A stretch of 64,000 nucleotides of DNA, taken from assembly GCA_002269645.1 (NCBI GenBank), contig NIVC01002661.1, forward strand, positions 87,631-151,630, written 5' to 3'. Source of the stretch: Macrostomum lignano. Taxonomy: Eukaryota. The position numbers and the translations under genes are program-made. Shown in pieces: positions 12,432 through 63,275 of this stretch. The notes under the pieces are model-generated. The model worked only from the letters and a program-made list of their open reading frames with translations, was not told the origin of the DNA and ran no database searches. Within the stretch, counting starts at the first letter, position 1. Each line of letters begins with the position of its first letter.

Positions 12432-12462
<31 letters not shown>

Positions 12463-12567: not shown

Positions 12568-12604
<37 letters not shown>

Positions 12605-27246: not shown

Positions 27247-30200
27247 ATGGAAGCGCATTCTTCAACGGAGTCTGCAACGGCTGCTCGGCAGCAGCAAAAG
27301 CAGGTGAGCAGGAAGTGCGACTGCCTTTTCGAAACAAACGAGTTACTTTACTAACTGACTTAGTGAATCGGTGAACGGTAAAAATTAATATAAGCGACAA
27401 CAGGCATTTACTCTCTTATATTTACAGGTTTATAATGATATTTCAAAGTAAAGAAACAAAGCACCAATCTTCTATGACACAAAGACTTCTCAGAACTTTT
27501 CACTTTGGTTCGTTTCCTTACCGTGAAAAAAACGAAATTACGGGTTTCGAACTCCAGAAAAGCTACCTGGACGAGCTACCGTACTACTCAAACTACCAAC
27601 TGGCCGATGACGAGGTGCCCCTGGCCAAGTACCTGCTGCCCGCCGACTCTGCTGAAGTGCAGCGAGGCGTCGAGTCCGGCCGCTTCCCGACGCTGGCCGG
27701 CTTGGCGCGGCTGCAGCGGCAGCGAGGCCAGCCGCCCAATCCGTTGGGCGACGCAGCGAACGAGTCGCCGCCGGCTCCGTTTCCACCGCGACGCACCAAA
27801 ACGGAGCTGCTCGAATCGAAGGACTTTACAGAGACGGACAAGTTCGCCGAGTCGGTGACGCCGTTGCCAAGCGACGACTGGGAGCAGCTGGCGGAGCGGC
27901 TGTTCGAGCAGAGCCGCAGCAACCTGGAGAAGGTGAGGGTCGCGTTCTGCTTCGCCTGCGCGCACCGGCAGCTGGCAGAGGTTGCAGAAGAAACTCCGGC
28001 ATACAAAGCTATCCGGGAAAATGAGGCGACGGATGTATTTGAGAAGCTGCTTGGGTAAGTTCCACGTTCTGGTCGATGTTTTTGTTTTGTGATCGATTGG
28101 ACGGAGTCTTTACGTCGAAGCTCTTGGTGTGAAGATTTTAGTAGTGGAAAATTTCTGATCGAACAGTTCAAGTTCAAATAAAATCGGTTGAGCCGTTTTT
28201 GCTAAAATCGATCGCACACACACACACACACACACACAGACAGACCATTTTTAGTATATGGAAGAGCCAAAAATGTAGGACTGTGTAAGTCCAAGTTACG
28301 AGCGTGGTCGACAAAGAGAAGAAAGAGAACGGAATGTTTAGCAGTCAATGATGTTTATTAAAAGAATATTTATTAAGACACGCGGGTGTAAACGTCTTCC
28401 TGATAATAAAAACAATCGTCGTTGTCTTTTGCATTGACTTTAGCATTTCGATTCGTTTCCAAAGATTCAAAACTAAATTTTTCAGCTGTGGAAAAGTGCC
28501 AAACAAGAAGCTTTACGGCTACAAAAAGGGTGCGAACTCCGACTCTGGCGTAAAGGCCGAACTCGGTGGCTGTTGGTTCGCGTGCTACGTTGAGGGCGAA
28601 TGGCGATTCGTGGACCCGCACTGGGGTGCCACGGCTGTGATGAATCACGATTCCGGCAGATATGGCTCCATTGACGATAAGGGCCGAGTCAGAAGTGCCA
28701 GAGAACAGAAGGGACAGAGCGTATTTCACCGTAATGAGTTCTACTTCCTGACTGATCCAGAAAGGCTGATCACAAACCATTGTCCACAGCAGCATGATCT
28801 GGAGTGGCAGCTGCTAGCGAGGCCACTCAGTATTGAAGAATTTGAACTGCTTCCTCACTACTTTGGAGGTTTTGCCAAAGAAATGGAATTCTACGATCTG
28901 GAGCCGATAAACTATCCTTATAACGTCATCGTAGCAAAGCCGGGACCCGTTGAGATTCTGTTGAAGGAGCGAGCGGGAGAACAGTATGAGTACAGCGGGC
29001 AGCTAAAGATACACACGAAGCACATCAGCAGTGAATCGAAGACAGCCATTTTGAGTGCCTATCAGGAGAAGGCTTGCGTCAGCAAGGGGATCCGTGTGTC
29101 AAAGGATACCGTCAAGTTCATCTTTGAGCCACCATATCCAGGACAGTACGCTCTGGAAATCATGCTCTGGCGTCAGGTCAGTGAGGTTACGCTAACTGGA
29201 TGTAAGTTCCTTACGTATACGATCCACTGCCCTCAAAACTGGGAATCGGTCGATGTCATCCCGGAGGGCCAGGAAGATCTTCGCGAGTTCGGACCAGGAC
29301 AAGACCTTCAACGAGCTGGACTAACCTCAGAAGCGCCCGGAGAGCTGAAAGCTGGCGACGGAGAGGCATCGCTGGAAATTGCACCGCTTGAAGAGGACGA
29401 AAAATCTAGCAGGTGAGTATAAGAACTACATTTTATGATGTGAAGTATGATCATCTCATTAAAAAAGCAAGCAACCAGGGAATGTCTAACATACAATTCG
29501 CAGCCATCAAAACTTTCAAAAGCAAGCAGATAATTTTTTTAAAATTCTAAAAATCTAAACAATTATTTTCCGACAATATTTACATCGCAGAAATCTGACG
29601 TGCCAAGCGCTGGGTCCGGACAACAAGCCCCTGCCGACGGGCAGCGTGCTCGTGTGGCGCGACGATCGCCGCAACGCCTTCCTGTTCCTGGCGCCCGATT
29701 CCGGCTACTACGCTCTGGTGCTCTACGAGAACGGTCGGCCCGTCGGCCAGTTCCTGGTGGACGCCAGCAGCGAAGCCAAGGACGGCGCGAGCTTCCCGCT
29801 GCCCGACTGGAGCCGCGTCGGAGGTCTCGGACTCGCCGCTGTAAACAAGGCGGACGGCGGAGGCTGTCGGCTTGTGCCACTGAGCCACCAAACGCCGTAC
29901 GTTCGAACCGAAGAGTCTGAGCTGGCGTTTCGCTTTGGCGTTGATGGCGGAGGCGAAGAAGGCGACGCAGGCATCGAACTGAAGTCGGAGATGTTGGGTG
30001 TCGTAGCGGACGGAGGGACCGAGTCGGTCGGCGACTACTCGTTAGTGAGCGGTGTCGATGGCGGCGGCTTCGAGGTGCGGTGCCGGTTCCCGAGAGCGGG
30101 CCACTACCTGCTACGCCTGTCGTTCCGAGAGAGCGGCGGAGACTGGCGCCCGTACTTCACGTACTTCGTGCGAGCGGTGGGCCAGCTGGACGGATCGGCA

Positions 30201-33200
30201 TCCGCGTTTCCGAGCCTCGGAGCGGACTGGCCGGTCGGCGGAGCGCTCATCGAGCCGCTGGACCGCACGCTGTCCGTTGGACAGCCGACGCCGATCCGCC
30301 TCCGTCTCGTGGATTCCGCAGCTATCGGCGCTGTGGAGGTGGTCGACGAGCGAAGCGGCAGTCGGGAGCCGTTGAGTCGCGACCCGCAGGACCCGCGGTT
30401 GTGGTTCGGGTCCGTGACGGCATCTGCGGGTAACACCGATGGAGCGAACGCTGCCGGGAGCAGCGGCGTGACGGTGGTGGCCCGTGTCAACGACGGCGTT
30501 GAGACACAGCTTGTAAAGTTCGACGTCGAGTCGGGAAGCAGCTCAGGAGCTGAATGAGCGACGTCGGGTGGCCGAGGAGAATCGGCAGAGGAAGCGGGAG
30601 AACCGGCGCCGCCACGAAGAGGGACTGGAGCCGCTGCCTACCCAGGTGCATTTTTTAATCCTACTTGCACATGTATCTCAGATTTTTGCGATTGATTAGT
30701 AAATAATGGCACCGATTGATCGCTTATTTCACAAGTTACGCTTTTACTTTTATCTTTATGTAGGATTCGCTTAAGAAATTGGCTGAAGCAGAAGCTGCTG
30801 CAAAAGCGGCGGCAGAGTCAGAAGCCGCAGCCAAAGCCAATGCGGCGTCCAACAAGACGTTTGAAAGGGTGGAAGTGGCTTCAAAAAAATCGACTGACTC
30901 GAAGGCAGCTTCCAATGAAGCTGTGAAAGCGGCATCCAGGGCGGAATCTGCCGGTCAGGCGGTGACAACGGCGGGTGCCGCAGTAGAGGCGGCTGTTCAG
31001 TCAGCGGCCGAAGCTGCCAGGACTGCGGCTGAAGCTGCGAAGTCAGGTGAAGTTAAAAAAGCTGCCAAGGCGGCGAAATTAGCGGAGACAGCCGCTCTTG
31101 AAGCGAAATCTGCCGCTCAGGCTGCAGTGAGTGCCGCGACCGATGCGCGTACGGCCGCCAAAGCGTCTGCCGAGGCGGAACAAAAAGCCAAGACGGCGGC
31201 CGAGGCGGCGAGAAACGAAGCGGACCAAGCAGCAGTGGAAGCTGAGAAATCAGGAAATGACCAAACCAAAAAGGCCGCTCAAAATGCCGCAACACTGGTC
31301 GATGAGGCGGAAGCTAAATTGAAGACGTCAAAGGAGGCTTCAGAAAAGGCTGCCGCGGAAGCTGACGCCGCAAGTAAGAAGGCCGCGAAGGCCTCCTCAG
31401 ATTTTGAAGCTGCAGCCGAATCGTCAGGTGAAGCGACAGCAGCAGCTAAAGCAGCAGCCGCGGCAAAGGCAGCCGAGGCAGAAGCTGCGGCGGCAGTGAA
31501 GGAAGAGGTCAAACTTCTCATTTCTCAGCTAGACGAGGCGCGGCTTCGTAGAAAAGTTGTTCAGTTGCTCAAGGCGATCAAGGCTTTGGAACCGCACGAA
31601 TTTGATATGCACGGTTTAGACAAGAAGAAACTGCAAGAGGCCCGGCTGACACTGACTGCCCTGCAGAATAGGAAGGGTGCGTTGAAACAGTGAGGTTTTA
31701 GATTCCGATTTTGCAATTATCATTTGTAGATTGACCGGATGAAGCGAATATAGTTACGTGGCTTACATCCGTTTTACATTCAGTTGAAATTGTTTTCAAA
31801 GCAGTTGAAAGCAAACCAGACAAGCCGTATTAAGACCTGAACCAGATTGGAACTTGATGATTCAGAATTTAGTTTGCCTGATGCATCATTTTTGAGCACT
31901 TGTAGGTGTATGTGCGTGACAAATTAGTGTTCCCACAATCCCTTCAAAGCACCCAACCGGAAAATTTACCGGCCCACCCCCATCCCCGCAGACCTCCGTG
32001 ACGCCATGGCGGACGCTCAGCGAGCCCGCAGCACCGACCGCCTGCGCGCGTTGGTGCACCGTCTGGAGGCTGAAGCTGAGTCGCAACCGCTGAAGGAGGC
32101 GCAGCTGGCGCTGTTCCGCGAGGACCTGCGGCTCGCCAGAGAGGCCATCCAGCGAGATGACAAGCTGAAGCGAATTCCCTCACACCGGCTGGAGATGAGT
32201 CCGAAGAGTCTGTCCGAGCTGAGGCAGTACAGCCGGCCAGTGGAAACGGTGCACCGGACGGTGCAGGCGCTGCTGCTGCTGTTCGGGCACTACGAAAAGC
32301 GCACACGGGTAGGCGATCCGCGCTTCATCATTTGCCGCTTCTATGGATTCATTCTGAGTCTGGGACAAACCATTGAAATGCTTGGCTGTGAATAAGTATT
32401 TTATTTAATAAATCATATTATATTCTCGAAACGTAGTTAATAAGGTGCTTAGCAATTTCTTACCAATGTCCCTTTTGGCGCGAATTTGAATTGGATTTAG
32501 TTAAATGAACATTTTTTGAAGATAACCAAATATGGCTTCTAAAGAAATTAACAATTACGCTACAACAACCATGAAAGCATGAAAGAGTGGGTTATAATAT
32601 TATAATTTGTTGTTTTGCCACCTGACAGAAATGGCCTCGCTGCCAGCCGCTGTTGAAGAGTATCAACAAGTCTGTCGCGGAGTTTCAGCCGCGCTTCGTT
32701 GATCCGCGCATCGCTGCCCGAAGCTGGCAGATTCTTGACGGCATCGACAAGCGCGAGATCGCCCTGCATAGCTCTGCCGCCTTCGCCTTCTATGAATGGG
32801 TTCGTTTAAATTCGAATAACTCGTTTTTGAAAACTCGAGCTGACGCAAGCGTGATTCGTTAGCATATAAAAATAGGCTTGTGCTTTTCTCACTAAAAGAT
32901 TCTCGCGGTTGACCCTAAAACCCTAGTAACTGCTTCCTAAAAGCTTTGAGACACCCTTCAAATCTCTGCTCTGCTATCTTTTGCCGCCTAAAGAGACTTG
33001 AGCCTTGACCACACACGTAGACTTGACACAAGCCGTAGACTTGACACAAGCCGTAGACTTGACACAAGCCGTAGACTTGACACAAGCCGTAGACTTGACA
33101 CCAGCCGTAGACTTGACACAAGCCGTAGACTTGACACAAGCCGTAGACTTGACACAAGCCGTAGACTTGACACAAGCCGTAGACTTGACACAAGCCGTAG

Positions 33201-34172
33201 ACTTGACACAAGCCGTAGACTTGACATAAGCCGTAGACTTGACACAAGCCGTAGACTTGACACAAGCCGTAGACTTGACACCAGCCGTAGACTTGACACA
33301 AGCCGTAGACTTGACACAAGCCGTAGACTTGACACAAGCCGTAGACTTGACACAAGCCGTAGACTTGACATAAGCCGTAGACTTGACACAAGCCGTAGAC
33401 TTGACACAAGCCGTAGACTTGACACAAGCCGTAGACTTGACACAAGCCGTAGACTTGACACAAGCCGTAGACTTGACATAAGCCGTAGACTTGACACAAG
33501 CCGTAGACTTGACACAAGCCGTAGACTTGACACCAGCCGTAGACTTGACACAAGCCGTAGACTTGACACAAGCCGTAGACTCACTATCCGGAAGTTATTA
33601 GTGAAAATCGTGAATTCGACTCAGTTGTTAATTGAGTAAGTTGTTTACAGGTTTTGTTTCATTAGGCCGATAAAGCAGAAATAGTGGCTCTGAGATTGTT
33701 ACATATTGGCCCATTTTAAAGTAAAATTTTGCTCAAATTTGATGAACAGATGCAGAGATGAGAAGGGTGTCATAAAGCGTATTGACTGCGCCAAGCTAAA
33801 AAACCTAGAAACCCTGGGGCACAAGAAACATACCTCGATTGGATGTCTCAGTGTGTCTAGTCGAACTGTTCCTACAAGTTATCGATAGCAGTCGATACTT
33901 CGGGCTCCATTCCGTCGCTTACAGTAAGTTGGCATCCCATTTGGCTTCCGGTTCCGACATCTCAGAATGAACCCCCTGTCTCAAAGTGGTTCAATTTCAT
34001 TTTTCCAATGTCCTTGCAGGCGTTCAAAACAGCGAACTCGATCAAGGAAGCGTCAACACCGGAGACCTTCGTCCCGGCCAGCATGAAGCAACAGATATAT
34101 ATCATTGGCATCACCGATGAAGAGGACGCGATTTGGGACTTCGAAGACGAAGGCATCCGCAGGAGGTCGTAA
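27247..34172 (+). pseudogene. KY/hillarin-like transglutaminase-fold + Ala-rich rod + dynein-MTBD-like gene, copy A (disrupted)
   Basis: Exons 27247-27303, 27428-28054, 28486-29412, 29591-30645, 30764-31676, 31992-32308, 32629-32799, 34020-34172. Relative to copy B it has an 8-nt deletion near 27449 (stop 27449-27451) and a 32-nt deletion near 30540 (stop 30555-30557). Confidence 0.7.
33016..33582. repeat. 18-bp minisatellite (GTAGACTTGACACAAGCC) in the last intron of copy A
   Basis: About 31 near-perfect units. Absent from the paralogous intron of copy B. Confidence 0.97.
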
Positions 34173-35150: not shown

Positions 35151-35417
35151 TTGATGTTTTGATGTACCCTTTCCCATTGAGGCGCCATTTCTTCATTCTC
35201 TTCTTTTGGATTTAACAAAATCAGTTTGTTTTTTACCCAGATAGTTCTTTACAGTTCTTGCTTTAATATGTGACAAAAGCCAACAAGTTGTCTTAAAATT
35301 TTTGTGACATTACACTCCTAATATTTTATAATCGGTGGCGAAAATTGTCAGATTTTAACAAATATTGTATTATGTTTGATTGTCCCTATGGTTCTCTTTA
35401 CTTTAAAATTACTAAAT

Positions 35418-38957: not shown

Positions 38958-41900
38958 ATGGAAGCTCATTCTGCAACGGAGTCTGCAACAGCTGCTCAGC
39001 AGGAGCAAAAACCGGTGAGCAAGTGCAGGAAGTGCAGCAGCCACCTTTTCGAATCAAGCGAAGCAAATTGTGAATTTTTGAGAAGAGACATTTGTAACCT
39101 TTTGAATTAGGGAAAAATTGAGCTTACAAAAAATCTCTCGAATTATGCAAATCAAAGCAGACGTCAACTTTATATGCTCTGGATTAAACCGACTGCAGTC
39201 GATAATTTGTAGAACGAATCGACTAGAATGTTTGCCCCACTGTTTGGGTAGCGTAAAATATACATACGTTGAAGCGTATATTTCTGCCAATTGTACTTTT
39301 TGATGGGATGCAATACGAACGCGAAAATCATACCGGAAGAGTGGAAAAAGGGGGAAGGACCTTTCGCGCACACTGCCAAACAATCAATTCTCAATTTGCT
39401 GATTTCAAAACCGATAGACTGTGACTGGCAATCAACAGCTTAACTATATGTTTTTTTGTTTTAAATAGTCAATACAACGACAGAAGAGCAGAATTCGAGG
39501 GCATGGGCATTTCTAAGGAAAGCAAAATCATAGAGAAGTTTAAATTGGCACCATTTTTATGAGTGTACAAAGACTAGTAGGTAAAGTAGAGTCTACAAGT
39601 CTTTAGCTTATTTCCTCCCCTTCTTCTTTCCGAAAAAGGAACACAATGGCTCTCTCGACGATACTTCGCTTGGCCTTTCAACTACTACTTTACTAAAGGA
39701 CATTGTGATGGTCGAAAATTGATATTAACTACAAGAATTTATGTTTTCAGGTTTGTAGTGATATTTTAAAGTACGAGCGTAAAGAAACAAAGCACCGACC
39801 TTCTATAATACAGAAACTTCTCAGAACTTTTGATATGGGTTCGTTTTCTTACCGTAAAAAAACGTAATTACGGGTTGCAAACTTCAGAAGAGCTACCTGG
39901 ACGAGCTGCCGTACTACTCCAACTACCAACTGGCCGATGATGAGGTGCCCTTGGCCAAGTACCTGCTTCCCGCCGACTCTGCCGAAGTGCAGCGAGGCGT
40001 CGAGTCCGGCCGCTTCCCGACGCTCTCCGGCTTGGCGCGGCTGCAGCGGCAGCGAGGCCAGCCGCCCAATTCGTTGGGCGACGCAACGAACGAGTCGCCG
40101 CCGGCTCCGTTTCCACCGCGACGCACCAAAACGGAGCTGCTCGAATCGAAGGACTTTACAGAGACGGACAAGTTCGCCGAGTCGGTGACGCCGTTGCCAA
40201 GCGACGACTGGGAGCAGCTGGCGGAGCGGCTGTTCGAGCAGAGCCGCAGCAACCTGGAGAAGGTGAGGGTCGCGTTCTGCTTCGCCTGCGCGCACCGGCA
40301 GCTGGCAGAGGTTGCAGAAGAATCTCTGGCATACAAAGCTATCCGGGAAAATGAGGCGACGGATGTATTTGAGAAGCTGCTTGGGTAAGTTCCACGTTCT
40401 GGTCGATGTTTTGGTCTTTTGAATCTTTACATAGAAACTTTTGACGTGAATATTTTAGTAGTGGAAAAGCAAAAAATGTTATACTGTATAAGACCAGGTT
40501 ACAAGTAGATTGTCGAATGAGTTCATCATATCCTCATAGGTGACCCTTAGACCCATAGACAAATAGGAAGCCCTCTAAGAGCGTAGTACAGAGGCAAACC
40601 CAAAGGAATCCTCACAGTCGACGTTTCAAAATCAATGTTCCATGCTGTACGCTCATTATTCAACGCTTCGGAATCATTATTTAAGGCTACTAAAATTTTT
40701 CGCCACTCGTGAAAAACTAATCATTGTCTACCTCCAAAACCGAATACACAACTAACCATTATTCAAGGCTACTAAAATGCTTTCATGGTACAATGGTTAG
40801 TGGTGTATATGGTTTTTGAGGTAGACAATGATTCGTTTTTCACGAGTGGCTACGCGCACTCGTCACATTGGCCATTAATTTAAATTCTCGCTTCATAATA
40901 GCTGTACGAGTATTGATTGAATTGTCTATAGTCGAAACAGGACTTTCAGTTAATGACCAGCCATTAAGCAAAGGTCATTACCGTGAAGTGACATTTCGAT
41001 CAATAAAGTTTATTCAGCGAATATTAACCAAGACTATCTGATGATAAAAACATTAGTCAGTGTCTTTTACATTGACTTTAGCATTTCGATTCGTTTCCAA
41101 GGATTCGAAACTAATTTTTTCAGCTGTGGAAAAGTGCCAAACAAGAAGCTTTACGGCTACAAAAAGGGTGCGGACTCCGACTCTGGCGTAAAGGCCGAAC
41201 TCGGTGGCTGTTGGTTCGCGTGCTACGTTGAGGGCGAATGGCGATTCGTTGACCCGCACTGGGGTGCTACGGCTGTGATGAACCAAGATTCCGGCAGATA
41301 TGGCTCCATTGACGATAAGGGCCGAGTCAGCAGTGCCAGAGAACAGAAGGGACAGAGCGTATTTTACCGTGATGAGTTTCACTTCCTGACTGATCCAGAA
41401 AGGCTGATCACAAACCATTGTCCACAACAGCATGATCTGGAGTGGCAGCTGCTAGCGAGGCCACTCAGTATTGAAGAATTTGAACTTTTTCCTCGCTACT
41501 TTGGAGGTTCTGCCATAGAAATGGAATTCTACGATCTGGAGCCGATAAACTATCCTTATAACGTCATCGTAGCAAAGCCGGGACCCGTTGAGATTCTGTT
41601 GAAGGAGCGATCGGGAGAACAGTATAGGTACAGCGGGCAGCTAAAGATACACAAGAAGCACATCAACAGTGAATCAAAGACAGCCATTTTGAGTGCCCAT
41701 CAGGAGAAGGCCTGCATCAGCAAGGGGATCCGTGTGTCAAAGGATACCGTCAAGTTCATCTTTGAGCCACCATATCCAGGACAATACGCTCTGGAAATCA
41801 TTCTCTGGCGTCAGGTCAGTGAGGTTACGCTAACTGGATGTAAGTTCCTTACGTATACGATCCACTGCCCTCAAAACTGGGAATCGGTCGATGTCATCCC

Positions 41901-44900
41901 GGAGGGCCAGGAAAATCTTCGCGAGTTCGGACCAGGACAAGACCTTCAACGAGCTGGACTAACCTCAGAAGCGCCCGGAGAGCTGAAGGCTGCCGACGGA
42001 GAGGCATCGCTGGAAATTGCACCGCTTGATGAGGACGAAAAACCTAGTAGTGACCATCTGAGGTGAGAGACTATGAGAGCCACATTCTATACTGAGAAAT
42101 CAGAAAACAAACAGTTAGGGCATGGCTACTATTCAATACGATTCCCTGCAGACAACAAATCACCACAGCAAACAGACAATAATCAGTTAGAATCTTCATA
42201 CGCTCGTAAAAACATCATTTTCTGTGGCATAAGACCAGCAAGACATCATTCAAATATTGATTTTGTGGTTATACTAACCAACAGAAAAAAATGAATCAAT
42301 AACCAGCCAATTAAAAAATCTGATTCCGACAATATTTACATTGCAGAAGTCTGACGTGCCAAGCGCTGGGTCCGGACAACAAGCCCCTGCCGACGGGCAG
42401 CGTGCTCGTGTGGCGCGACGATCGCCGCAACGCCTTCCTGTTCCTGGCGCCCGATTCCGGCTACTACGCTCTGGTGCTCTACGAGAACGGTCGGCCCGTC
42501 GGCCAGTTCCTGGTGGACGCCAGCAGCGAAGCCAAGGACGGCGCGAGCTTCCCGCTGCCCGACTGGAGCCGTGTCGGAGGTCTCGGACTCGCCGCTGTAA
42601 ACAAGGCGGACGGCGGAGGCTGTCGGCTGGTGCCACTGAGCCACCAAACGCCGTACGTTCGAACCGAAGAGTTCGAGTTGGCGATGCGCTTCGGTGTTGA
42701 TGGCGCAGGCGAAGAAGGCGACGCAGGTATCGAATTGAAGTCGGAGATGCTGGGTGTCGGAGCGGACGGAGGGACCGAGTCGGTCGGCGACTACTCGTTA
42801 GTGAGCGGCGTCGAGGGCGGCGGCTTCGAGGTGCGGTGCCGGTTCCCGAGAGCGGGCCACTACCTGCTCCGCCTGTCGTTCCGAGAGAGCGGCGGAGACT
42901 GGCGCCCGTACTTCACGTACTTCGTGCGAGCTGTGGGCCAGCTGGACGGATCGGCATCCGCGTTTCCGAGCCTCGGTGCGGACTGGCCGGTCGGCGGAGC
43001 GCTCATCGAGCCGCTGGACCGCACGCTGTCCGTTGGACAGCCGACGCCGATATGCCTCCGTCTCGTGGATTCCGCAGCTATCGGCGCTGTGGAGGTGGTC
43101 GACGAGCGAAGCGGCAGTCGGGAGCCGTTGAGTCGCGACCCGCAGGACCCGCGGTTGTGGTTCGGGTCCGTGACGGCATCTGCGGGTAACACCGATGGAG
43201 CGAACGCTGCCGGGAGCGGCGGCGTGACGGTGGTGGCCCGTGTCAACGACGGCGTTGAGACACAGCTTGTAAAGTTCGACGTCGAGTCGGGAAGCAGCGC
43301 GGAGGCCAAGGCGGCGGCACTGCGCGAAGCTCGGGAGCTAAACGAGCGACGTCGGGTGGCCGAGGAGAATCGGCAGCGGAAGCGGGAGAACCGGCGCCGC
43401 CACGAAGAGGGACTGGAGCCGCTGCCTACCCAGGTGCATTTTTTAATCCTACTTGCACATGTATCTCAGATTTTTGCGATTGATTAGTAAATAATGGCAC
43501 CGATTGATCGCTTATTTCACAAGTTACGCTTTTACTTTTATCTTTATGTAGGATTCGCTTAAGAAATTGGCTGAAGCAGAAGCTGCTGCAAAAGCGGCGG
43601 CAGAGGCAGAAGCCGCAGCCAAAGCCAATGCGGCGTCCAACAAGACGTTTGAAAGGGTGGAAGTGGCTTCAAAAAAATCGACTGACTCGAAGGCAGCTTC
43701 CAATGAAGCTGTGAAAGCGGCATCCAGGGCGGAATCTGCCGGTCAGGCGGTGACAACGGCGGGTGCCGCAGTAGAGGCGGCTGTTCAGTCAGCGGCCGAA
43801 GCTGCCAGGACTGCGGCTGAAGCTGCGAAGTCAGGTGAAGTTAAAAAAGCTGCCAAGGCGGCGAAATTAGCGGAGACAGCCGCTCTTGAAGCGAAATCTG
43901 CCGCTCAGGCTGCAGTGAGTGCCGCGACCGATGCGCGTACGGCCGCCAAAGCGTCTGCCGAGGCGGAACAAAAAGCCAAGACGGCGGCCGAGGCGGCGAG
44001 AAACGAAGCGGACCAAGCAGCAGTGGAAGCTGAGAAATCAGGAAATGACCAAACCAAAAAGGCCGCTCAAAATGCCGCAACACTGGTCGATGAGGCGGAA
44101 GCTAAATTGAAGACGTCAAAGGAGGCTTCAGAAAAGGCTGCCGCGGAAGCTGACGCCGCAAGTAAGAAGGCCGCGAAGGCCTCCTCAGATTCTGAGGCTG
44201 CAAGCAAATCGTTAGCTGAAGCGAATGCGGCAGCGACAACAGCTGCTGAAGCAGCAGCAGCGGCAAAGGCAGCCGAGGCAGAAGCTGCGGCGGCAGCGAA
44301 GGAAGAGGTCAAACTTCTCATTTCTCAGCTAGACGAGGCGCTGCTTAGTAGAAAAGTTGTTCAGTTGCGCAAGGCGATCAAGGCTTTGGAACCGCACGAG
44401 TTTGGATTGCACCGCTATCACGAAAGGAAACTGCGGGAAGCTCGGCTGACACTGACTGCGCTGCAGAATAGGAAGGGTGCGTGAGGAACGACGAGGTTGT
44501 ACAGTCCGATTTCAATGAGGAGTTCATAGTTTTGTGGTTTACATCCAGGTCAACATTCAGTTGAAATTCTCAATGAAGTCATACGAAAGCCTGATACAGG
44601 TATAGAGGATTAGAGACAAACCAGATTGGAACCTGATGATTTTGAATTCAGCTTTTGTTTATCTGATGCATCATTCTTGAGTTACCCGACCAGCTCACCT
44701 CCCACCCCTGCAGACATACGGGACGCCATGGCGGACGCTCAGCGAGCCCGCAGCACCGACCGCCTGCGCGCGTTGGTGCACCGTCTGGAGGCTGAAGCCG
44801 AGTCGCAGCCGCTGACGGAGGCGCAGCTGGCGCTGTTCAGCGAGGACCTGCGGCTCGCCAGAGAGGCCATCCAGCGAGATGACAAGCTGAAGCGAATTCC

Positions 44901-47820: not shown

Positions 47821-50800
47821 TGTGATAGCACAGCGGGATCGGTTAAACACTTCTTGAGAATATTTAAGCATTGGCAACTTGAGCGAGCAGAGAAAATCCA
47901 GGCAAGAGAAAAGGCTTCAGTGATTAGACAGTATCCGCTCCCGACCATGGAAACTGCTGAGTCTGGCATGGTAAGTACTGGCACACTTAAATTTCAATTA
48001 GCATTGAGTCGTGTTTACAATCCGATTGTTGGTTTCTTTTCATTCAAATAATAATTCATTCATTGAACTTGAATGCATTCTTCGCTCGTTCCAAAACAAG
48101 ATTTTGCCTCAAATTTTTTGTAAGTACCGGGTACGACTCTCAGACCCACCAGCTCGTCTTTGACTCCTCTTCTCCTTCATATTCATCCTCCATCCAACCC
48201 CCATGATACCTATCATGTCGTCTCCAAACCTATCATATCGTCTCCATACCCTCTCGTCTCCATCTAGTCTCCATACCCTCCATCTAGTCTCCATACCCTC
48301 CATCTAGTCTCCATACCCTCCATTTAGTCTCCATACCCTCCATCTAGTCTCCATACCCTCCATCTAGTCTCCATACCCTTCATCTAGTCTCCATACCCTC
48401 CATCTAGTCTCCATACCCTCCATCTAGTCTCCATACCCTTCATCTAGTCTCCATACCCTTCATCTAGTCTCCATACCCTCCATTTAGTCTCCATACCCTC
48501 CATCTAGTCTCCATACCCTCCATCTAGTCTCCATACCCTCCATCTAGTCTCCATACCCTCCATCTAGTCTCCATACCCTCCATCTAGTCTCCATACCCTT
48601 CATCTAGTCTCCATACCCTCCATCTAGTCTCCATACCCTTCATCTAGTCTCCATACCATCCATATAGTCTTCAAACCCCTGAGTAGTCCCTGAGTTGGTC
48701 CTATAATATTTGGTTAGCAGACCTGTAATTGAGCGCAAGGTTGCTTGCTGCTTTCAGTTAAGATGCGCTGAACAGAAATTTACAATTTAGAAATTTAGCA
48801 GTTTTGTCTGAGACAGTGAGAGAATGCTTTTTGTATCAATTGACTTAGGCGAGCTACCTGGACGACCTGCCGTACTACTCCAACTACCAACTGGCCGATG
48901 ATGAGGTGCCCCTGCCAAGTACCTGCTTCCCGCCGACTCTGCCGAAGTGCAGCGAGGCGTCGAGTCCGGCCGCTTCCCGACGCTCTCCGGCTTGGCGCGG
49001 CTGCAGCGGCAGCGAGGCCAGCCGCCCAATCCGTTGGGCGACGCGGCGAACGAGTCGCCGCCGGCTCCGTTTCCACCGCGACGCACCAAAACGGAGCTGC
49101 TCGAATCGAAGGACTTTACAGAGACGGACAAGTTCGCCGAGTCGGTGACGCCGTTGCCAAGCGACGACTGGGAGCAGCTGGCGGAGCGGCTGTTCGAGCA
49201 GAGCCGCAGCAACCTGGAGAAGGTGAGGGTCGCGTTCTGCTTCGCCTGCGCGCACCGGCAGCTGGCAGAGGCTGCTGAAGAGAAGCAACCGTATGAAAAT
49301 ATTCGACTTGGAAACTGCAGCGAAGTTTTTGCCGCGCTACTTATGTAAGATTGCCAAGCCATACTAGAAATCGTTCACTCGCACCAATGTTTCAGGTTCC
49401 AGAATAAATAAAAATGCAATATTTGACGCGCTTTCAGCAATTATCTACGAGTGTGTCACTAAATTTGGTAACCCACAGTAAGACAGGCCTGCATGACATT
49501 CGAGTTGTGCATGCCAACTATTGTTAAGTGGGCTGAGGACCCAACTGCAAGGCCATGAATGATACACGTATTTCACCAACTCTCTTTGATCATACATGCG
49601 CACAATCGGCACAATCAGCACTGAGCCTCAGTGCGGCCTTGCCAAGCCTCCAAATTTCATCAGCGCGTCGACCGCATGTGCCTGCATCAGCTGTGACTTC
49701 GTTGGTCACTGGCCTTCACCGAGGCGAAGCTTCTGAACATTCAACAGGTGACACCAGGTAACTATGGACACCCTGTTGCAACAACAACAACAAAGTACTT
49801 CACCCGCCAGCCACGCAGTGGCTAGAAAGAGGGGAAAAGTCAGAGAGCGCGTCTCTGGGCATAGCCCTCAGAAAGTCACAACCCCCAGCTTGGTCCAGGG
49901 CGCCAGCATCGGTCAAAAGCCTATCAGGGTATCTCGCCGTTCGCCCTTGGCTTCGCCTGCGCGGTCCCTGCAGCTTGAGCAGCAGCACCTCGTGCAGCGG
50001 CTCAGGGCAGCGAGCCTCCGACCGGATGACGTGGCCAGCCAGTCGAAGTCGCCGCAGGTCAGAAGGCCGCATCATGCCCTCGTGTAGAAAGCGGCGTTGG
50101 TCTCGCTGCCTGAACCGCTGCGCACTCCGAAAGCCGCACGCAGCATGGCCGCATGCGCAGCGTCTAGCTGCCTCTCCAAAGCGTCCGTCAGGGTCCAGAT
50201 CTCGGCGTTGTACAACAAGACAGTCTCAACGACTGCCTGAAACAGCCGAGCTTTGAGCCCGTCATCCAGGGCCTCAGAATGGAGCGCGGAGCGCACAGAA
50301 CGAAACGCGGCCCATGCCAGGCCTTGTCTTCTCACCAGGTTGTCGGCAACGTCCGGCACGAGGCCGCCGAGGTACAGGAACCGCTGGCAACGGGTAATCA
50401 TGATTGCCTCTCGGGCAGCGTCTCGGTAGTTGATCTCGACAGGCAGGTTGGAGGACACCGTGAAGACTACCGTCTTCCGTGCGTTCAGCATGAGGCCGAC
50501 TCGCGATGCTGCTGCCGTCAGGCCATCCAGCAGCCGCTGAGCGCCTTCAGCCGACGATGACAGCAGCGCGAGGTCGTCCGCGCAGCCGAGAATGGAGAGC
50601 CGCTTCTCAGGGTGCCACCGACTCATGCGTCTTCGCAGCAGGAAGCCGTTGGGTAGGCCGGTCCTCAGTACCCAATCCAGACCAAGCACAAACAGGAAAG
50701 GCGCCAGAGTGTCACCCTGCAGCACGCCTGACGACGTGCTAAATTGGTCCGACAGTCCATCTGGCGTCATCACCGAAGCGGTCGTATCCTGGTACATCAA

Positions 50801-53800
50801 CATGATGGCGGAAATCAGTTGCTCCGGTTGCGGATTTCTCTAGTTTCGCTGATCAAGCCTCAGTGGGCGAACCTCAACTGCTCGACATCTTCAGCTAGTC
50901 TCTCAAGCATTCCGTCATCATCCCGATGCCGTCGACACCTTCAACAGATAGCCCAGATGACTATGCATTTTTCTTCTCTAGATACGAGCTACATTTCTGA
51001 AACATAAAATTTTTTACCAGTACCTGTTGAAGGACAGAAGCTCTGCCTGGGTGAAGGCCAGTGACCAAAGAAGTCACAGCTGATGCAAACACGTGTAGTC
51101 GATGCGCTGATGAAATTTGGATGCTTGGCAAGGCTGCACTGAGGTGGAGTGCTGCTTGGCGCACAGGGGTGTACTGAATGCACTAGGGAAACTTGGGAAT
51201 ACTCGGGGAAAGAGTCGACCTTCTGGTAGAATCGTTGAATATCTCGACAGTCCAAAAAGCTTGATTTTGTTTGTGAAGGTGCGCAACAAAAGTTTAGCCC
51301 GTTTTCTTGAATTTCGTGTGCCTGCGTTGCTCCGTTCTGGCGCAGCAAAAAAGTTGTCAGGGAGGGGGGGTAATTATACCTTGATAGGTCGACGGGCGGA
51401 AAAATGGCTTCGGATTCTTACTGTTAAATAGTCTATGCAAAAAATCCTCTATTAAATTGGGCACTCCTTTCCTGTGTACTATTTAACTTGAATAATTTGA
51501 AACATTTGCTGATATCATGCGGGAATTATTGAAAAGATCACTTTGAAAATTGCTTGAAAATTTCACCTGACCCTATCGGACACAATTTAGCATAGCCGGT
51601 GTGCCGATGCAAGTAATTACCGGCTACAAGAAGGGCATCGGTTATGAGTCTGGGCTCAGGGCACCACTTGGCGGCGTCTGGTTTGCCTGCTACGTCGAGG
51701 GCGAATGGCGATTCATAGATCCGCACTGGTCCGCGCAATCCGTCAGCGGTTTCGAGGCAGGCAACTACAGACAGGTGGATGAGCGCGGCCTTGTGAATGA
51801 TGTAACAGAAGTCGGCGGCACCACAGTCTACGATCTCAACGAGTTCTGGTTCCTGACTGACCCGCACCAGTTCGTTGTCAGTCACTTCCCCAGCGAAGAC
51901 CAGCTCGAGTGGCAGCTGCTGGCCAGGCCGCTGCAATTTGAAGAGTTCGAAGAAATGATCGACTACTTTGACGGCACGGAAACGGAGATGAACGTCTACC
52001 AGCTAGAAACAGTCAGTCATCCAAAAAACGTCATCATTTCAAAGCCCGGATCCGTAGAAATCCTGCTCCGAGAACTTACTAATGAGCAGTACATGTACGA
52101 AATGCTGCTGAAAATACACAAGAAGCACATTGCTGACGGATCGAACTTGGCGCATTTGACTGCCTACCAACAGAAGGCCTGTGTCAGCAAGGCTATTCGG
52201 GTGTCCAAGAGCACCGTAAAGTTCATATTCGAGCCGCCGCATGCGGGACAGTACGCCCTGGCCATCAGGCTCTGGCGTTACGTGTCAGATGAAAGATTAA
52301 AAGGCAGCACGTTTGTCACTTACGCTGTTCACAGTCCACAGAGCTGGGTCTCAGCCAATTTTATCCCGGATGGCCATGAAGATCTGAACGAATTCGGCTC
52401 CGGTCAAGAAATGCGTGAAGAGGGGCTCAGCTCAGATGAGTCAGGCGAACTGAGGGCAGCCAATGGAGAAGCAACTTTCGAGATTACTGCACTAGAAGAC
52501 AGGTTTGGCATAAGGTGAACACTATTGTTAAATTTCGTACGCTTCTACTAAAATTGAAGGTTAGAATACTTCGAATACAGGTTTCTATTAGCAGGAAATT
52601 GGCAGCATAGTAGGCAATTATGAGAAGAGACACTAAAATAGAGACTGTAGCATTATTTCTTACTTTTGAAATACAGGCGTAGCTACTGAACTATTACCAA
52701 TTGCAGAAATCTGATGTGCCAAGCGCTGGGTCCGGACAACAAGCCCCTGCCGACGAGCAGCGTGCTCGTGTGGCGCGACAATCACCGCAACGCCTTCCTG
52801 TTCCTGGCGCCCGATTCCGGCTACTACGCTCTGGTGCTCTACGAGAACGGTCGGCCCGTCGGCCAGTTCCTGGTGGACGCCAGCAGCGAAGCCAAGGACG
52901 GCGCGAGCTTCCCGCTGCCCGACTGGAGCCGCGTCGGAGGTCTCGGACTCGCCGCTGCAAGCAAGGCGAACGGCGGAGGCTGTCGGCTGGTGCCACTGAG
53001 CCACCAAACGCCGTACGTTCGAACCGAAGAGTTCGAGCTGGCGATGCGCTTCGGTGTTGATGGCGCAGGCGAAGAAGGCGACGCAGGCATCGATCTGAAG
53101 TCGGAGATGCTGGGTATCGGAGCGGACGGAGGGACCGAGTCGGTCGGCGACTACTCGTTAGTGAGCGGCGTCGAGGGCGGCGGCTTCGAGGTGCGGTGCC
53201 GGTTCCCGAGAGCGGGCCACTACCTGCTACGCCTGTCGTTCCGAGAGAGCGGCGGAGACTGGCGCCCGTACTTCACGTACTTCGTGCGAGCGGTGGGCCA
53301 GCTGGACGGATCGGCATCCGCGTTTCCGAGCCTCGGTGCGGACTGGCCGGTCGGCGGAGCGCTCATCGAGCCGCTGGACCGCACGCTGTCCGTTGGACAG
53401 CCGACGCCGATCCGCCTCCGTTTCGAGGACGCCACAGCTGTCGGCGCTGTGGAGGTGGTCGATGAGCGAAGCGGCAGTCGGGAGCCGTTGAGTCGCGACC
53501 CGCAGGACCCGCGGTTGTGGTTCGGGTCCGTGACGGCATCTGCGGGTAACACCGATGGAGCGAACACTGCGGGGAGCGGCGGCGTGACGATGGTGGCCCG
53601 TGTCAACGACGGCGTTGAGACACAGCTTGTAAAGTTCGACGTTGAGTCGGAGAGCAGCGCAGAGGCCAAGGCGGCGGCACTGCGCGAAGCTCGGGAGCTA
53701 AACGAGCGACGTCGGGTGGCCGAGGAGAATCGGCAGCGGAAACAGGAGAACCGACACCGCCGCGATAAGGGACTGGAGTCGCTGCCTGTTTGGGTACTTA

Positions 53801-56150
53801 ATAAAGTTGTTCTGCCATCGGTTTTATCTCGAAATGCATTTGTTCGAAATATTTTTGGTATTTTTTATCCTTTTCCTGACAGAGTCACGCTGAGGTGAGA
53901 GCTGCTGCCGATTTGGCTGCAAAAAGGCTGGCCTTGGCGTACGAGAAAGAAGAAAAAAGAGCAAAAGCTTTTGCAAAATCAGCTGCGGCAGAAAGAGCTC
54001 AAGCTCAGAGCCTAGCAGCAGCAAAAGCAGCGGCTGAAGCCAAAGCGGCTTTGAAAGCGGCAGCAATGGAGGCATCAAAGTTGGCGGCTTTAGCATTCGC
54101 GGTGTCGAGGGCGGTGGCCGAGTCCCAATCGGCAGTATTGGCGGCTGCTGATGAGGAACTGGAAACAAAGACCGCGGCTGATGCGAAGGATATCTCGGCG
54201 GCATCGTATCGATCGGAAATGACTGAGAAGGCGGCTGTCAAAGCCAAATTAGCGGCTGAGTCAGCGAACGACGTGGCAGCCGAATTGCAGGCGCTTGCAG
54301 CTGCAGCAGCAGAAGAAAAAGTGACTGCCAGTTCGGCAGCTGATGCGGCTTCAAAAGCGGCTGAGGCTGCAGCCTTCGATGCGGAGATCGCCGGTTCTCC
54401 GCTACCCGACGAGGCTGCAAAGTTTGCATCATCAGCGTCGCACGAAGCCGAAGCTGCTGCCAGGGCAGTCACCGAGATCGCTGCAAAGTCAGCCACCGAG
54501 GCCTCCATCGCGAAGAGGGGAGCCCGCATGGCGGCTGCTTCGGCGGAGACGGCAGCAAAGTCAGCTGCGGTTGCGGCTGCTGCAGCGCAGGAGGCCACAG
54601 AAGCGATTGCGGCGGAAAAAGCTGAGCTGAATTATTTGATTGCTGAGCTGGACGTGGCCTTGTTGGACCGAAAGTTAACTCGGGTGCGCAAGGCCGTTGA
54701 GTCGTTGGAGGCTCGCGAAAAGGAGCTGCGCGGCAGTCAGTCGAGAAAGCTGAAGGAGGCACAACAGACTTTAACGGCGCTACAGAATAGAAAAGGTTCT
54801 GTTTTTCTTTGACCAAAAAAGTAGCAGTTGTGCTTGAATTCTGATATGTAACTCAAAGTAGCTTGTACATGTATAGTAAATCCTTTACATTCAGTTGGCA
54901 GTGACAATTTCGACCCTGCTCTATCCAACCTCCTCAGATCTTCGGGACGCCATGGCGGACGCTCAGCGAGCCCGCAGCACCGACCGCCTGCGCGCGTTGG
55001 TGCACCGTCTGGAGGCTGAAGCCGAGTCGCAGCCGCTGACGGAGGCGCAGCTGGCGCTGTTCAGCGAGGACCTGCGGCTCGCCAGAGAGGCCATCCAGCG
55101 AGATGACAAGCTGAAGCGAATTCCCTCACACCGGCTGGAGATGAGTCCGAAGAGTCTGTCCGAGCTGAAGCAGTACAGCCGGCCAGTGGAAACGGTGCAC
55201 CGGACGGTGCAGGCGCTGCTGCTGCTGCTCGGGTACTACGAAAAGCGCACACGGGTGAGTCAAGGACTACCCAAGTAGAAGGGCGGGAAACTACATTTTC
55301 GGGGAACTTTTGAGAGGCTTGTTTTATTGAAGAAATACATTACGGAGAATGGAGGTTTTCATTTTTTCAGCGTAAAATTTGTAATGATCCATTTGATGGC
55401 GGACAAACCCAATGATCATCTTTTGATACGACTTGATTTTCTGTTAGTTCTATAGATATTCGTAGAGCTTTTTTGTTCAGAAAGTTTGTATTTTGTGTTA
55501 ATTTTATGAGCGCAATCCTAATTACATGTCCAAACATCGTAAAAATGACACAACTTAATTCATTCGCAATTTCGCATTGAGGGCGGAGAAGCTTTTTAAA
55601 TGCTAGGTCGGTGTGTAGTGTACAGAGTGCAGAGCTTGTGTTCTATAGATTGTACTGTGCAGTCATTTTGCTGCCCCTCACTGGGTCTGTTTACTCGTGA
55701 ACTTCTCCACGTTACCAACAGAAGTGGCACCGCTGCCAGCCGCTGTTGAAGAGCATCAACAAGTTTGTCGCGGAGTTTCAGCCGCGCTTCGTTGATCCGC
55801 GCATCGCCGCCCGAAGTTCGGAGATTCTGGGCAGCATCGACAAGCGCGAGATCGCCCTGCAGAGCGCTGCCGCCTTCGCCTTCTACCAATGGGTTCGTTT
55901 GAGGAATTTTTCTTGACAATGAGAGTGCAGCATGGCAGCCTGACTCCTTCATCAATCAATTTTACTCCAGGCGGTCAGGACCACGCAGTCCATCAAGGAT
56001 GCGACCTCAGTGGACAGTTTTGTTCCAGCCAGCATGGTTCAGCAAAGGTGGATCCTTCGGGTCACGATGGAGGAGGACTCTGCGTTGGACTTTCAAGACA
56101 AGGGCATTCGCAAGAAGAGTGCACGTCGTCCTCGGACTTCAAAAATTTGA
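47821..56150 (+). CDS. KY/hillarin-like transglutaminase-fold + Ala-rich rod + dynein-MTBD-like protein, copy C (divergent paralogue; 5' end uncertain)
   Basis: Exons ?-47970, 48849-49344, 51591-52502, 52707-53793, 53883-54795, 54938-55254, 55722-55892, 55971-56150 with compatible phases. One apparent 1-nt deletion near 48914 (CTGCC vs CTGGCC in copy A). Confidence 0.72.
48260..48662. repeat. 20-bp minisatellite (CATCTAGTCTCCATACCCTC) in a copy C intron
   Basis: About 20 tandem units. Confidence 0.95.
49780..50826 (-). mobile_element. 5'-truncated non-LTR retrotransposon (RTE-like), degenerate reverse transcriptase
   Basis: RT motifs GVLQGDTLAPFLF, [Y>C]ADDLALL, FLYLG, RRLRLAGHVIR. (TTG)n 3' tail. 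GTTGC target duplication at 49775-49779 and 50827-50831. Frameshift near 50075. Confidence 0.88.
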
Positions 56151-59749: not shown

Positions 59750-60795
59750 TTATACATCAGGCGTCTTCCAGCACATGACGATATGGCGACCAATCTTGAA
59801 GAAAAATGACAGCCCAGGCTCGTGGCTATAGCTGGCCCAGTACTGTCCCGTAACCATGACAACGTGCCAAAGCTTGCCGAACTGGCCGTCCAGCTGCTGC
59901 TTCAGCCGGCCAGCGACATCTTTCTCATCTTTGCCGCGTCTCTGGGCGTCGCGAAATATTTCAGTCAGGTCCACCTGCATCTCTAGGCCCATGCTGGAGG
60001 CGATGACGGTGACGTCCTCCGGCAGCCGGTTATTCCTCAGACACTCGGCCTTGAGCTGGTTGAGTCGGTAGATTCGCCTATTTTAGGAAAATGCGATGGG
60101 TTGCTTTCGTGCGTTACCACGAGTTCATTCGACGCATTGCACGAAGTTGGGTTTTGCGAGCTAATGATGACGCAGCAATATGTGCTCTAAAGAATAAAAA
60201 GTTCAATTGAATCATGAAAAACAGTATACAGTCTTACGCTTGCTTCGGATTGAGCCCCAGAACGTTGCAGTATTCGTCCAGTGTAATCGCGCCGTCATCG
60301 TTCTCATCAAATAGCTTCATCCATTTCTGAAAAAGCGAATTCGGTAAATGCCATGACTTGGATGTTTGTGTGTAACTATTACTCAATACTATCTGCGAGT
60401 CTGATGAATGCAGCTAAATAACATTTCAGCGACCATTTTACCTACCTTGATACCAACATAAGATCTGTTAGATCAGTTTAAACCCTTAAATACCGGAGTC
60501 CGGATCACCGTGTGAATAAGTACACAAAGCATTGGAAACACTGGAAGCTACAAACCTCGCCAAAATTGGCCTCAAACTGGCTGCTGCTGGTCATGTAGGC
60601 CGCTAATTCATCCGGTGTGATGGACTCGCTCCGATCCTTGTCGACCGCAAAGAACGCATCAAGGAAGGGATTCTGTGCAGCTGCCTCCTCTGCTGCGACG
60701 CGTCCCGGTGACAACGGCGGTGGAGCAGGCGATGTTGAGCCCGAAGCGGAGGCAGTGGAGTGCGCTGGCGACACAGAGAGCGACATGCTTCGCAT
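59750..60795 (-). CDS. Tegumental-allergen-like (TAL) protein: two EF-hands + C-terminal dynein light chain (LC8)-like domain, 3 exons
   Basis: Exons 60795-60556, 60326-60238, 60077-59750. EF loops DKDRSESITPDE and DENDDGAITLDE. LC8-like end VAGRLKQQLDGQFGKLWHVVMVTGQYWASYSHEPGLSFFFKIGRHIVMCWKTP. Confidence 0.85.
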
Positions 60796-62798: not shown

Positions 62799-63275
62799 TT
62801 CCAAAGAATATGCCAGAAGGAAACATTTTACAAGTACTAGACTACTACAAAAATTATGCGCTAGAAGGAGATGAAATTCCATTAAATAACTATCTTTTGA
62901 GTTCCCCAAAAGGATTTCCAAACTTTGCGCAGCCTGGTTGACAGTCAGCTGCAAGCTGCCAAACCGAGTGCGGCGAGGGCCAACCAGCCACAGCCAACTC
63001 CGTGTAGCAGACGAAAAGAAGAGCTGTTTCAGATTCAGAAATTCACCGATATTGATCAGGCAGCAGAGGTCGGTGCAACTGAACTGGCAGGACGACTGGG
63101 AGACGCTTTCTCAGAAATTGTTTCGGAATTCGACCGGCGATCTCGAAAAAGTGCGCTCTGCTTTTGTGTTTACCTGCAGAGACTGGAACAACGGACTGCC
63201 AGCTCGCACAAAGAGAGCTCAGCGTACACGCTTATTCGAGAGAAAACTATGCAGAGATTTTTGGAACTTGGTCAG
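62799..63275 (+). CDS. Fourth, more divergent paralogue (copy D) of the KY/hillarin-like gene: one exon, gene continues beyond the window
   Basis: Stitched frames give LDYYKNYALEGDEIPLNNYLL, FPTLRSLV, RRKEELFQIQKFTDID, DDWETLSQKLF..DLEKVRSAFVFTC, AYTLIREK, colinear with exon 2 of A/B/C. Several frameshifts. Donor CAG|GTAGGA at 63275. Confidence 0.65.

Follow-up and report, generated by a model that had tools for sequence, protein, structure and literature searches.

Organization of the gene cluster

The window analysed here is a stretch of 64,000 nucleotides (nt) of Macrostomum lignano DNA (contig NIVC01002661.1 of assembly GCA_002269645.1, forward-strand positions 87,631 to 151,630), and all coordinates count from its first letter. 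It has the eukaryotic features of multi-exon ORFs, microsatellites and transposon relics, and M. lignano entries are its best protein matches. It contains a tandem cluster of genes for KY/hillarin-like proteins with a transglutaminase (TG)-like core, and the main interest of the cluster is that its products end in an unannotated domain of the dynein microtubule-binding domain (MTBD) type, carried by non-motor proteins. The exon models were made from three-frame maps and inspection of each boundary, and the repeat pattern was obtained from a self-BLAST of the window. Copies A, B and C were found to have seven exons each, all on the plus strand, with GT-AG introns and compatible phases. The copies are as follows.

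27428..34172, plus strand: copy A, exons 27435-28054, 28486-29412, 29591-30645, 30764-31676, 31992-32308, 32629-32799 and 34020-34172
39751..46391, plus strand: copy B, exons 39858-40384, 41124-42062, 42347-43433, 43552-44476, 44714-45030, 45351-45521 and 46224-46391, the stop codon ending at 46391
48849..56150, plus strand: copy C, exons 48905-49344, 51591-52514, 52707-53793, 53883-54795, 54938-55254, 55722-55892 and 55971-56150
62828..63278, plus strand: copy D, a diverged exon-1 homologue only, closed by a GT donor at 63279

A preliminary description of this DNA had claimed four same-strand paralogues of one architecture, which held for A, B and C with their seven spliced exons and did not hold for D, where exon 1 alone was found. 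This exon shows 30-58% amino acid (aa) identity to copy A and requires three frame changes. Because the remaining exons of D would be outside the window, its architecture is not visible, and the copy is probably either a pseudogene or an older paralogue that continues beyond the window. The splicing of B and C, proposed earlier as a check, yielded clean seven-exon models with 1377 codons open in B (from 39858) and 1343 in C, and the complete gene product is about 1,380 aa long. The junctions between exons 2 and 3, 5 and 6, and 6 and 7 agree with the database proteins P0001, P0002 and P0003. Each complete gene encodes, in this order, a KY/hillarin-type TG-like core, Ig-like_KY beta domains, an Ala-rich rod, two short helical repeats and the C-terminal domain. 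The nucleotide identity of A and B was 81-97% across blocks and 95-97% in exons 1-4; the resemblance of the copies is far greater than chance would give, and the tandem repeat seen by self-BLAST and the substitution analysis given below both show the local expansion that had been suggested to be real.

Copy A has its own ATG at 27435 with an AG acceptor 8 nt before it. In copy C, the homology to A and B begins right behind the AG acceptor at 48848. The acceptors of B (39750/39751) and C (48848/48849) lie directly before exon 1 and in frame with the open reading frames (ORFs), and the spliced leader of M. lignano ends in ATG (PMC8629364); so it is possible, judging from these positions, that the spliced leader donates the start codon of both copies. 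Furthermore, the region 45382-57503 was found to be 97-98.5% identical to contig NIVC01002652.1 of the same assembly, and the two loci are thus sister copies, whether allelic, homeologous or differently assembled. M. lignano is described as a hidden polyploid in PMC10468722.

The transglutaminase-like core and Ig-like_KY region

The N-terminal half of the product was delimited in copy B as follows.

40200..41420 (approximate), plus strand: TG-like core, running from the 3' portion of exon 1 through intron 1 into the 5' portion of exon 2, with the Cys, His and Asp positions included
41420..43300, plus strand: beta-rich region with Ig-like_KY (PF23265), covering what remains of exon 2 and the greater part of exon 3

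The Ig-like_KY family matched copy B in two stretches with 30.9 bits (cutoff 27) and copy C below the cutoff with 23-25 bits. A family TG-core profile, made from 40 rows of relatives with the window copies and the near-identical UniProt model P0003 excluded, matched C at 4.6e-47 and B at 9.9e-40, and with the Ig-like_KY match on B it bears out the KY/hillarin-like nature first ascribed to the core. The suggested test with Pfam Transglut_core (PF01841) succeeded in part: the family was sub-threshold on C (14.2 bits, cutoff 23) and gave no match on B, whereas the family TG-core profile matched both.

The Cys-His-Asp triad expected of an active enzyme of the transglutaminase/cysteine-protease fold was not found in the window copies, in agreement with what had been read from the sequence. 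The Cys position is GNCSEVF in C, the sole window copy with Cys, and NEATDVF, with Ala, in A and B. All three copies have Gly in place of the His (GGCWFA or GGVWFA, GGCWFA in B) and keep the Asp (VDPHW). In the family alignment of 43 rows, 34 rows have Tyr, His or Phe in place of the Cys, and a single row, the KY-like protein P0005 retrieved by the N-terminal query, has a His at the His position. Since the catalytic Cys and His are lost across the alignment, the pseudo-enzyme state is a property of the whole subfamily and not of local decay.

The Ala-rich rod

Exon 4 contributes the rod at the following positions.

43552..44476, plus strand: exon 4 of copy B, the Ala/Lys/Glu-rich helical rod and then the first helical repeat
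30764-31676 (copy A) and 53883-54795 (copy C), plus strand: the equivalents of exon 4

The helical segment that had been estimated at about 300 aa of Ala, Glu and Lys was found as a rod of 250 aa with 42% Ala, 12% Lys and 12% Glu, and with no Pro in B. Its content of Leu, Ile, Val, Met and Phe is below 10% and no heptad signal was seen. On both grounds a canonical coiled coil was rejected, and the rod is, by its composition, a helical spacer. The synonymous sites of exon 4 in copy C were saturated relative to B.

Homology of the C-terminal domain to the dynein MTBD

The dynein MTBD is usually treated as unique to dynein, where its affinity depends on how the stalk helices slide. The domain homologous to it was mapped to the last three exons of each complete copy.

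44917..46391 (44917-45030, 45351-45521, 46224-46391), plus strand: MTBD-homologous domain of copy B, aa 1228-1377 of the model
55141..56150 (55141-55254, 55722-55892, 55971-56150), plus strand: MTBD-homologous domain of copy C, the translation being identical over this span to BOX15_Mlig000549g1 (P0001)
32195..34172 (32195-32308, 32629-32799, 34020-34172), plus strand: MTBD-homologous domain of copy A, the exons intact but downstream of the exon-3 frameshift

P0001 starts 18 residues further upstream in exon 5 than the domain of copy C. The C-terminal motif quoted in the preliminary description is present in all three complete copies and reads MSPKSLSEL(R/K)QYSRPVETVHRTVQALLLL(L/F)G...KW(P/H)RCQPLLKSINK...FQPRFVDPRIAARS...IAL(Q/H)S(A/S)AAFAFY(E/Q)W. 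Pfam searches with the raw ORFs and with the spliced C-terminal domain gave sub-threshold noise only, for example PhoU.

The relationship was revealed by an alignment of 40 domain sequences with window copy B as the first row. When the profile of this alignment was searched against PDB sequences, every one of the 60 matches listed (of 80) was a dynein heavy chain with the MTBD as its aligned part, headed by DNAH6 (2.2e-13), the yeast Dyn1 MTBD (2.4e-13) and mouse 3err (2e-9). The profile-profile comparison with the yeast Dyn1 MTBD by hhalign gave a probability of 97.8% and an E-value of 8.9e-13 over 105 columns. These alignments were collinear over 105-124 columns with negligible bias and share the Pro/Trp/Trp landmarks; the Pro after helix 1 was found in 40 of the 40 aligned sequences, and a Glu, a Tyr, a Gly and two Trp in at least 90% of them. 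The membership of the window copies did not depend on Macrostomum sequences, as TG-core and C-terminal profiles without any of them matched B and C at E-values of 1e-30 to 5e-47, and the domain profile stripped of the five Macrostomum rows of the alignment still matched both at about 1e-31.

The fold was examined with AlphaFold2. A four-sequence alignment gave a mean predicted local distance difference test (pLDDT) of 48 and no usable model, and the 40-sequence alignment gave a model of the window domain with a pLDDT of 93.4 and a predicted template-modelling score of 0.86. Foldseek with the latter returned dynein stalk/MTBD structures at all of ranks 1-24, with template-modelling scores (by target) of 0.54-0.66 on isolated MTBDs (6kio_M, 0.66; 6rzb_C, 0.62 with a root-mean-square deviation of 4.6 Å over 123 columns). 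Thus, the dynein MTBD pattern recognized at first reading was confirmed, also by the structural test proposed for it, and the transitive profile evidence and the fold together establish the homology: on these profiles and the predicted model, the C-terminal domain is a true homologue of the dynein heavy-chain MTBD with a globular six-helix fold.

Convergence or compositional bias as the source of this likeness would be in line with the lack of any single-sequence match to Pfam MT or the PDB and with Foldseek E-values above 1e-3, but it does not account for profile and profile-profile E-values of about 1e-12 to 1e-13 with negligible bias, for collinearity over 105-124 columns with shared Pro/Trp/Trp, or for the unanimity of the first 24 structural matches.

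The name "dynein-stalk mimic", which had been given to these proteins, was rejected as inaccurate. An antiparallel stalk needs two coiled-coil helices, CC1 and CC2, and no returning CC2 was found: the domain stands at the extreme C-terminus, and the last MTBD helix is followed by about 55 residues that were modelled as two short helices and carry the family-specific motif PA(S/N)..Q..(I/L)(L/F)G. The domain is thus a bare MTBD on a one-way helical spacer. Compared with the dynein MTBD (6kjo, 6rzb, 3err and DNAH6 in 9d2f), it is a homologous globular domain of helices that shares the Pro behind helix 1 and the two Trp, whereas the CC1/CC2 stalk, the AAA+ ring and the linker are missing and the tail of about 55 aa replaces CC2. 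Pfam detected no AAA or dynein motor domains in the window proteins.

Distribution of the architecture

The family was collected with a profile of four Macrostomum copies, searched exhaustively with HMMER; a word-indexed protein search had given 2-3 relatives per query. The domain was found in 156 proteins at E ≤ 1e-3 and in 23 at E ≤ 1e-10, almost always at the extreme C-terminus of its carriers. Molluscs, annelids and flatworms supply most of the carriers in the form of hillarin-like or KY-like proteins, so that the shared C-terminus suspected in lophotrochozoan KY-like proteins does exist. The sampled ones come from scallops, limpets, other gastropods, bivalves, a leech, other annelids and M. 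lignano and bear names such as "hillarin-like", "KY-like immunoglobulin-like domain-containing protein" and "kyphoscoliosis peptidase". Carriers without the KY part were also found, among them CLCA-like and mucin-like proteins of amphioxus, EFCAB5 of chytrids and a protein of Cyanophora. Among the long carriers (n = 45), Ig-like_KY was present in 31 and Transglut_core in 23, which places the TG-like part and the C-terminal domain in one polypeptide in many species; "hillarin-like" RefSeq models and the intact M. lignano paralogue PAA59878.1 (1217 aa) carry the same fusion. A weak AAA_lid_4 match (E 0.0017) was the single AAA-related signal among these 45 relatives, and the longest listed carrier is 2303 aa.

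These fusions also bear on whether the TG-like and C-terminal exons could be separate genes, as the NCBI annotation of the sister contig would have it by calling the C-terminal exons of the copy C equivalent as a separate partial gene. Dozens of full-length proteins of other species hold both parts in one chain and the splice phases in the window are compatible. Separate genes or a convergent domain are thus highly improbable, and both alternatives are already largely refuted.

The architecture is not unique to this locus, and its proteins are already in the databases. The spiralian hillarin/KY-like proteins (XP_069137733.1 of Argopecten irradians, "hillarin-like"; XP_009018530.1 of Helobdella robusta, a KY-like Ig-like domain protein; PAA59878.1 of M. 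lignano) have the same overall architecture as the window genes, with a TG-like core lacking the catalytic Cys and His, Ig-like_KY, a helical linker and the extreme C-terminal domain. The window genes differ from them in the extra 250-aa, 42%-Ala rod, which is absent from P0009, the one paralogue whose region before the domain was examined, and in forming a young tandem array with gene conversion. The Ala-rich spacer is best explained as lineage-specific, and the locus is a variant, with an Ala-rich rod and a tandem array, of an existing but undescribed architecture. Vertebrate KY (kyphoscoliosis peptidase) is regarded as a cytoskeletal scaffold and not an enzyme, in the context of the muscle Z-disc. 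It has the TG-like core and Ig-like_KY of the window genes; none was seen among 30 sampled clusters or the listed domain carriers, so it appears to be without the rod and the MTBD-like domain. A literature search found no publication linking hillarin, KY or EFCAB5 with a dynein-type MTBD or an "MTBD-like" domain.

Integrity and divergence of the copies

The frames of the copies were inspected for decay. Exon 3 of copy A lacks 32 nt (junction 30542/30543) and runs into a stop at 30555-30557; because this deletion shifts the frame, the rod and the MTBD-like domain of the copy are out of frame. Copy B differs from A by 1 nt in a run of seven A at 39856-39862; with one extra A the frame would reach a Met at 39835 (MGSFSYRKKNVITG...) and give a product of 1385 aa. 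Copy C has a 1-nt deletion at about 48913, which the sister contig does not share. When the sister contig (NIVC01002652.1:140533-152942) was compared with window positions 48547-57503, 33 indels were counted in 8.9 kb, and six of these were 1-nt homopolymer deletions within exons of the sister contig, which explain why the public gene models are fragments (172 aa in P0001 and 799 aa in P0003, part of which is locally shifted). Since the sister contig carries such deletions in its own exons, single-base frameshifts are weak evidence of decay, and those of B and C look like assembly or allelic noise on this comparison. B and C as pseudogenes on the strength of 1-nt indels alone was therefore rejected.

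The substitution analysis (Nei-Gojobori) gave ratios of nonsynonymous to synonymous divergence (dN/dS) of 0.2-0.8 in all segments, which indicates coding constraint. Copies A and B are young, with a synonymous divergence (dS) of 0.03-0.12. Between B and C, the dS was 0.056 in exon 3, which is nearly identical, 0.17 in exon 1 and 0.24 in exons 5-7, and it was saturated in exons 2 and 4; this mosaic along the exons argues for gene conversion.

The whole cluster might still consist of decaying duplicates, with the functional members elsewhere, e.g. Mlig001984, and an inactive locus here. Such decay would fit the 32-nt deletion of A, the 1-nt breaks in exon 1 of B and C, the three frame changes of D, the reverse-transcriptase fragment in intron 1 of C, the THAP/P-element relic downstream of it and the fragmentary public models of the C equivalent. 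It is unlikely, however, as no segment has a dN/dS outside 0.2-0.8 and the open frames of C and B run to 1343 and 1377 codons; the sister contig, free of the C deletion, has six exon deletions of its own that mark 1-nt indels as noise; its B equivalent is annotated with a 1386-aa product ending at the same stop as B; and transposon fragments are common in introns. Taken together, the sequences are best explained by a tandem, partly gene-converted cluster belonging to a spiralian subfamily of KY/hillarin-like cytoplasmic scaffold proteins, in which B and C are probably functional, A is truncated by its 32-nt deletion and D would be a relic.

A putative microtubule anchor and its alternative

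A function is suggested by the combination of these parts. Because the catalytic Cys and His are lost, the TG-fold core would act as a binding module and not as an enzyme. The MTBD-like domain would be a constitutive, non-motor microtubule anchor, and as there is neither a returning coiled coil nor an AAA+ ring, switching by helix sliding would not be available to it. Through the long flexible spacer, this anchor would tether the KY-type scaffold to cytoplasmic or axonemal microtubules. The domain core is basic (net charge +8, isoelectric point 10.1), and this together with the conservation of helices 1, 3 and 6 fits such a role. We give a probability of roughly 0.55 to the reading that the domain is a constitutive microtubule anchor for a dead TG/Ig-like scaffold, the binding itself being predicted, indirectly, from the basic core and the conserved interface helices.

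Several observations weigh against this reading. Pfam MT (PF12777), which had been proposed as a check on the window protein, gave no match at E ≤ 10 with the spliced C-terminal 163 or 276 aa and matched 3 of the 45 long carriers weakly (best E 0.002). A phmmer search of the PDB with the C-terminal 276 aa gave a spurious TTK match only. The MTBD homology is visible only through the family profile, a single window sequence being insufficient, and the Foldseek E-values are weak, from 8e-3 to 1, though the matches were unanimous. At the position which we take to be the microtubule-contacting Arg of dynein helix 6 (NRAS), the window copies read LQS. Every copy has at least one frame disruption in this assembly. 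The last point comes from EFCAB5, which has the same domain type in chytrids and whose bovine homologue is reported to touch RGS22, LRRD1 and STKLD1 rather than tubulin.

EFCAB5 is, like the window proteins, a non-dynein carrier of an MTBD-like domain near the C-terminus, and among the other non-motor contexts it alone has a solved structure. Two chytrid proteins annotated as EFCAB5 (P0104 and P0131) have an unannotated dynein-MTBD-like domain near the C-terminus, which the Macrostomum profile matched distantly (E of about 1e-5). Chytrid EFCAB5 matched the bovine sperm axoneme chain 9fqr_Xl at E 1.7e-12, the part of the match over the MTBD-like C-terminal domain being weak (independent E-value 0.005). 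The label of 9fqr_Xl in the PDB table, "A-kinase anchoring protein 14", looks like a mislabel for EFCAB5 (1509 aa). Bovine EFCAB5 has been modelled in the stalk of radial spoke 3 (RS3) in contact with RGS22, LRRD1 and STKLD1; it contains a DPY30 motif, and its reported role is the bridging of radial spokes 2 and 3 (PMC11779644). No mention of an MTBD-like domain was found in the EFCAB5 papers examined. The N-terminal context of EFCAB5 is entirely different from that of the window proteins: Dpy-30, EF-hand and GAF occur among the non-KY members of the family (Pfam), none of DPY30, EF-hand and GAF was found by Pfam in the window proteins, and the C-terminal domain type is all that the two have in common.

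This relative raises the alternative that the domain is a true MTBD homologue that does not bind tubulin and serves instead as a protein-protein docking module in a larger cytoskeletal or axonemal complex, so that the KY-like part would be delivered to the complex and not to the lattice. The Macrostomum-only profile finds chytrid EFCAB5, the amphioxus CLCA-like and the Cyanophora proteins; the match of chytrid EFCAB5 to 9fqr_Xl extends in part over the C-terminal domain; EFCAB5 is placed in the RS3 stalk touching other proteins (PMC11779644); and a domain without a stalk has no regulated release, which would be unusual for a lattice binder. On the other hand, the EFCAB5 contacts are not assigned to particular EFCAB5 domains in the papers examined, and the RS3 stalk stands on the A-tubule, where a contact with tubulin is possible. 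The window domain is also strongly basic, as expected of a binder of acidic tubulin, and conservation in the family alignment is highest in the helices that make up the interface of dynein with tubulin. By analogy with EFCAB5, docking would be the main contender, though on this balance we consider it rather unlikely.

If the anchor reading is true, these genes provide a natural stand-alone MTBD on non-motor scaffolds and with it a stalk-free system for the action of the MTBD itself. The poorly understood pseudo-transglutaminases of the hillarin/KY-like type in molluscs, annelids and flatworms, which are now annotated merely as "hillarin-like", "kyphoscoliosis peptidase" or "uncharacterized", would gain a cytoskeletal function that can be tested. 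It would also draw attention to this domain, likewise unannotated, in EFCAB5 of the sperm radial spoke. RNAi and transgenesis are established in M. lignano, which makes studies of localisation and loss of function practicable. We suggest more tentatively, at somewhat less than even odds, that the dynein MTBD is an ancient portable module that also occurs outside motors (in chytrid fungi, a glaucophyte, amphioxus and massively in Spiralia), and that in KY/hillarin-like proteins of the window type it would be a constitutive, registry-free microtubule anchor, which would make these proteins an unrecognised class of non-motor microtubule-associated proteins. This could also account for the concentration of leech Hillarin at the axon hillock, which is rich in microtubules.

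Other features of the window

The remaining features include mobile-element remnants and repeats associated with the cluster as well as neighbouring genes.

50072-50803, minus strand: reverse-transcriptase (RVT_1) fragment inside intron 1 of copy C
56950-57189 and 58161-58637, plus strand: weak THAP-domain match (22.2 bits, just below the cutoff) and remnant of a P-element transposase helix-turn-helix (THAP9-like), downstream of copy C
32915-33640, 4625-4942 and 11927-12983: long microsatellite/minisatellite arrays with spurious long ORFs on both strands
22463-23479, plus strand: intact ORF of 338 aa, hydrophobic at its N-terminus and matched below threshold by Laminin_G_3/ConA-like (23.4 bits, cutoff 27.6)
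35345-36112, plus strand: 5'-truncated, near-identical paralogue of the 338-aa ORF, between copies A and B
59750-59992 and 60505-60795, minus strand: Dynein_light type 1 (LC8-like) exon (56 bits) and EF-hand-like ORF (18.6 bits, below the cutoff)
18746-19558, plus strand: Hemingway/CFAP97 exon (ciliary protein family), the domain interrupted by a long in-frame (SVSQ)n repeat from a microsatellite
about 3700-10400, plus strand: multi-exon AMP-binding gene (fatty-acid transport/acyl-CoA synthetase-like)
13018-14100, minus strand: NAD-dependent epimerase/dehydratase, single exon, 360 aa

Intron 1 is about 2.2 kb long in copy C and 0.4-0.7 kb in A and B, and the 0.7-kb microsatellite at 32915-33640 lies in intron 6 of copy A. 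The near-identical paralogue between A and B indicates that the A/B duplication carried the gene of the 338-aa ORF along. The EF-hand-like ORF lies about 500 nt upstream of the LC8-like exon on the same strand, between copies C and D, and by their arrangement the two may form an EF-hand/LC8 fusion gene.

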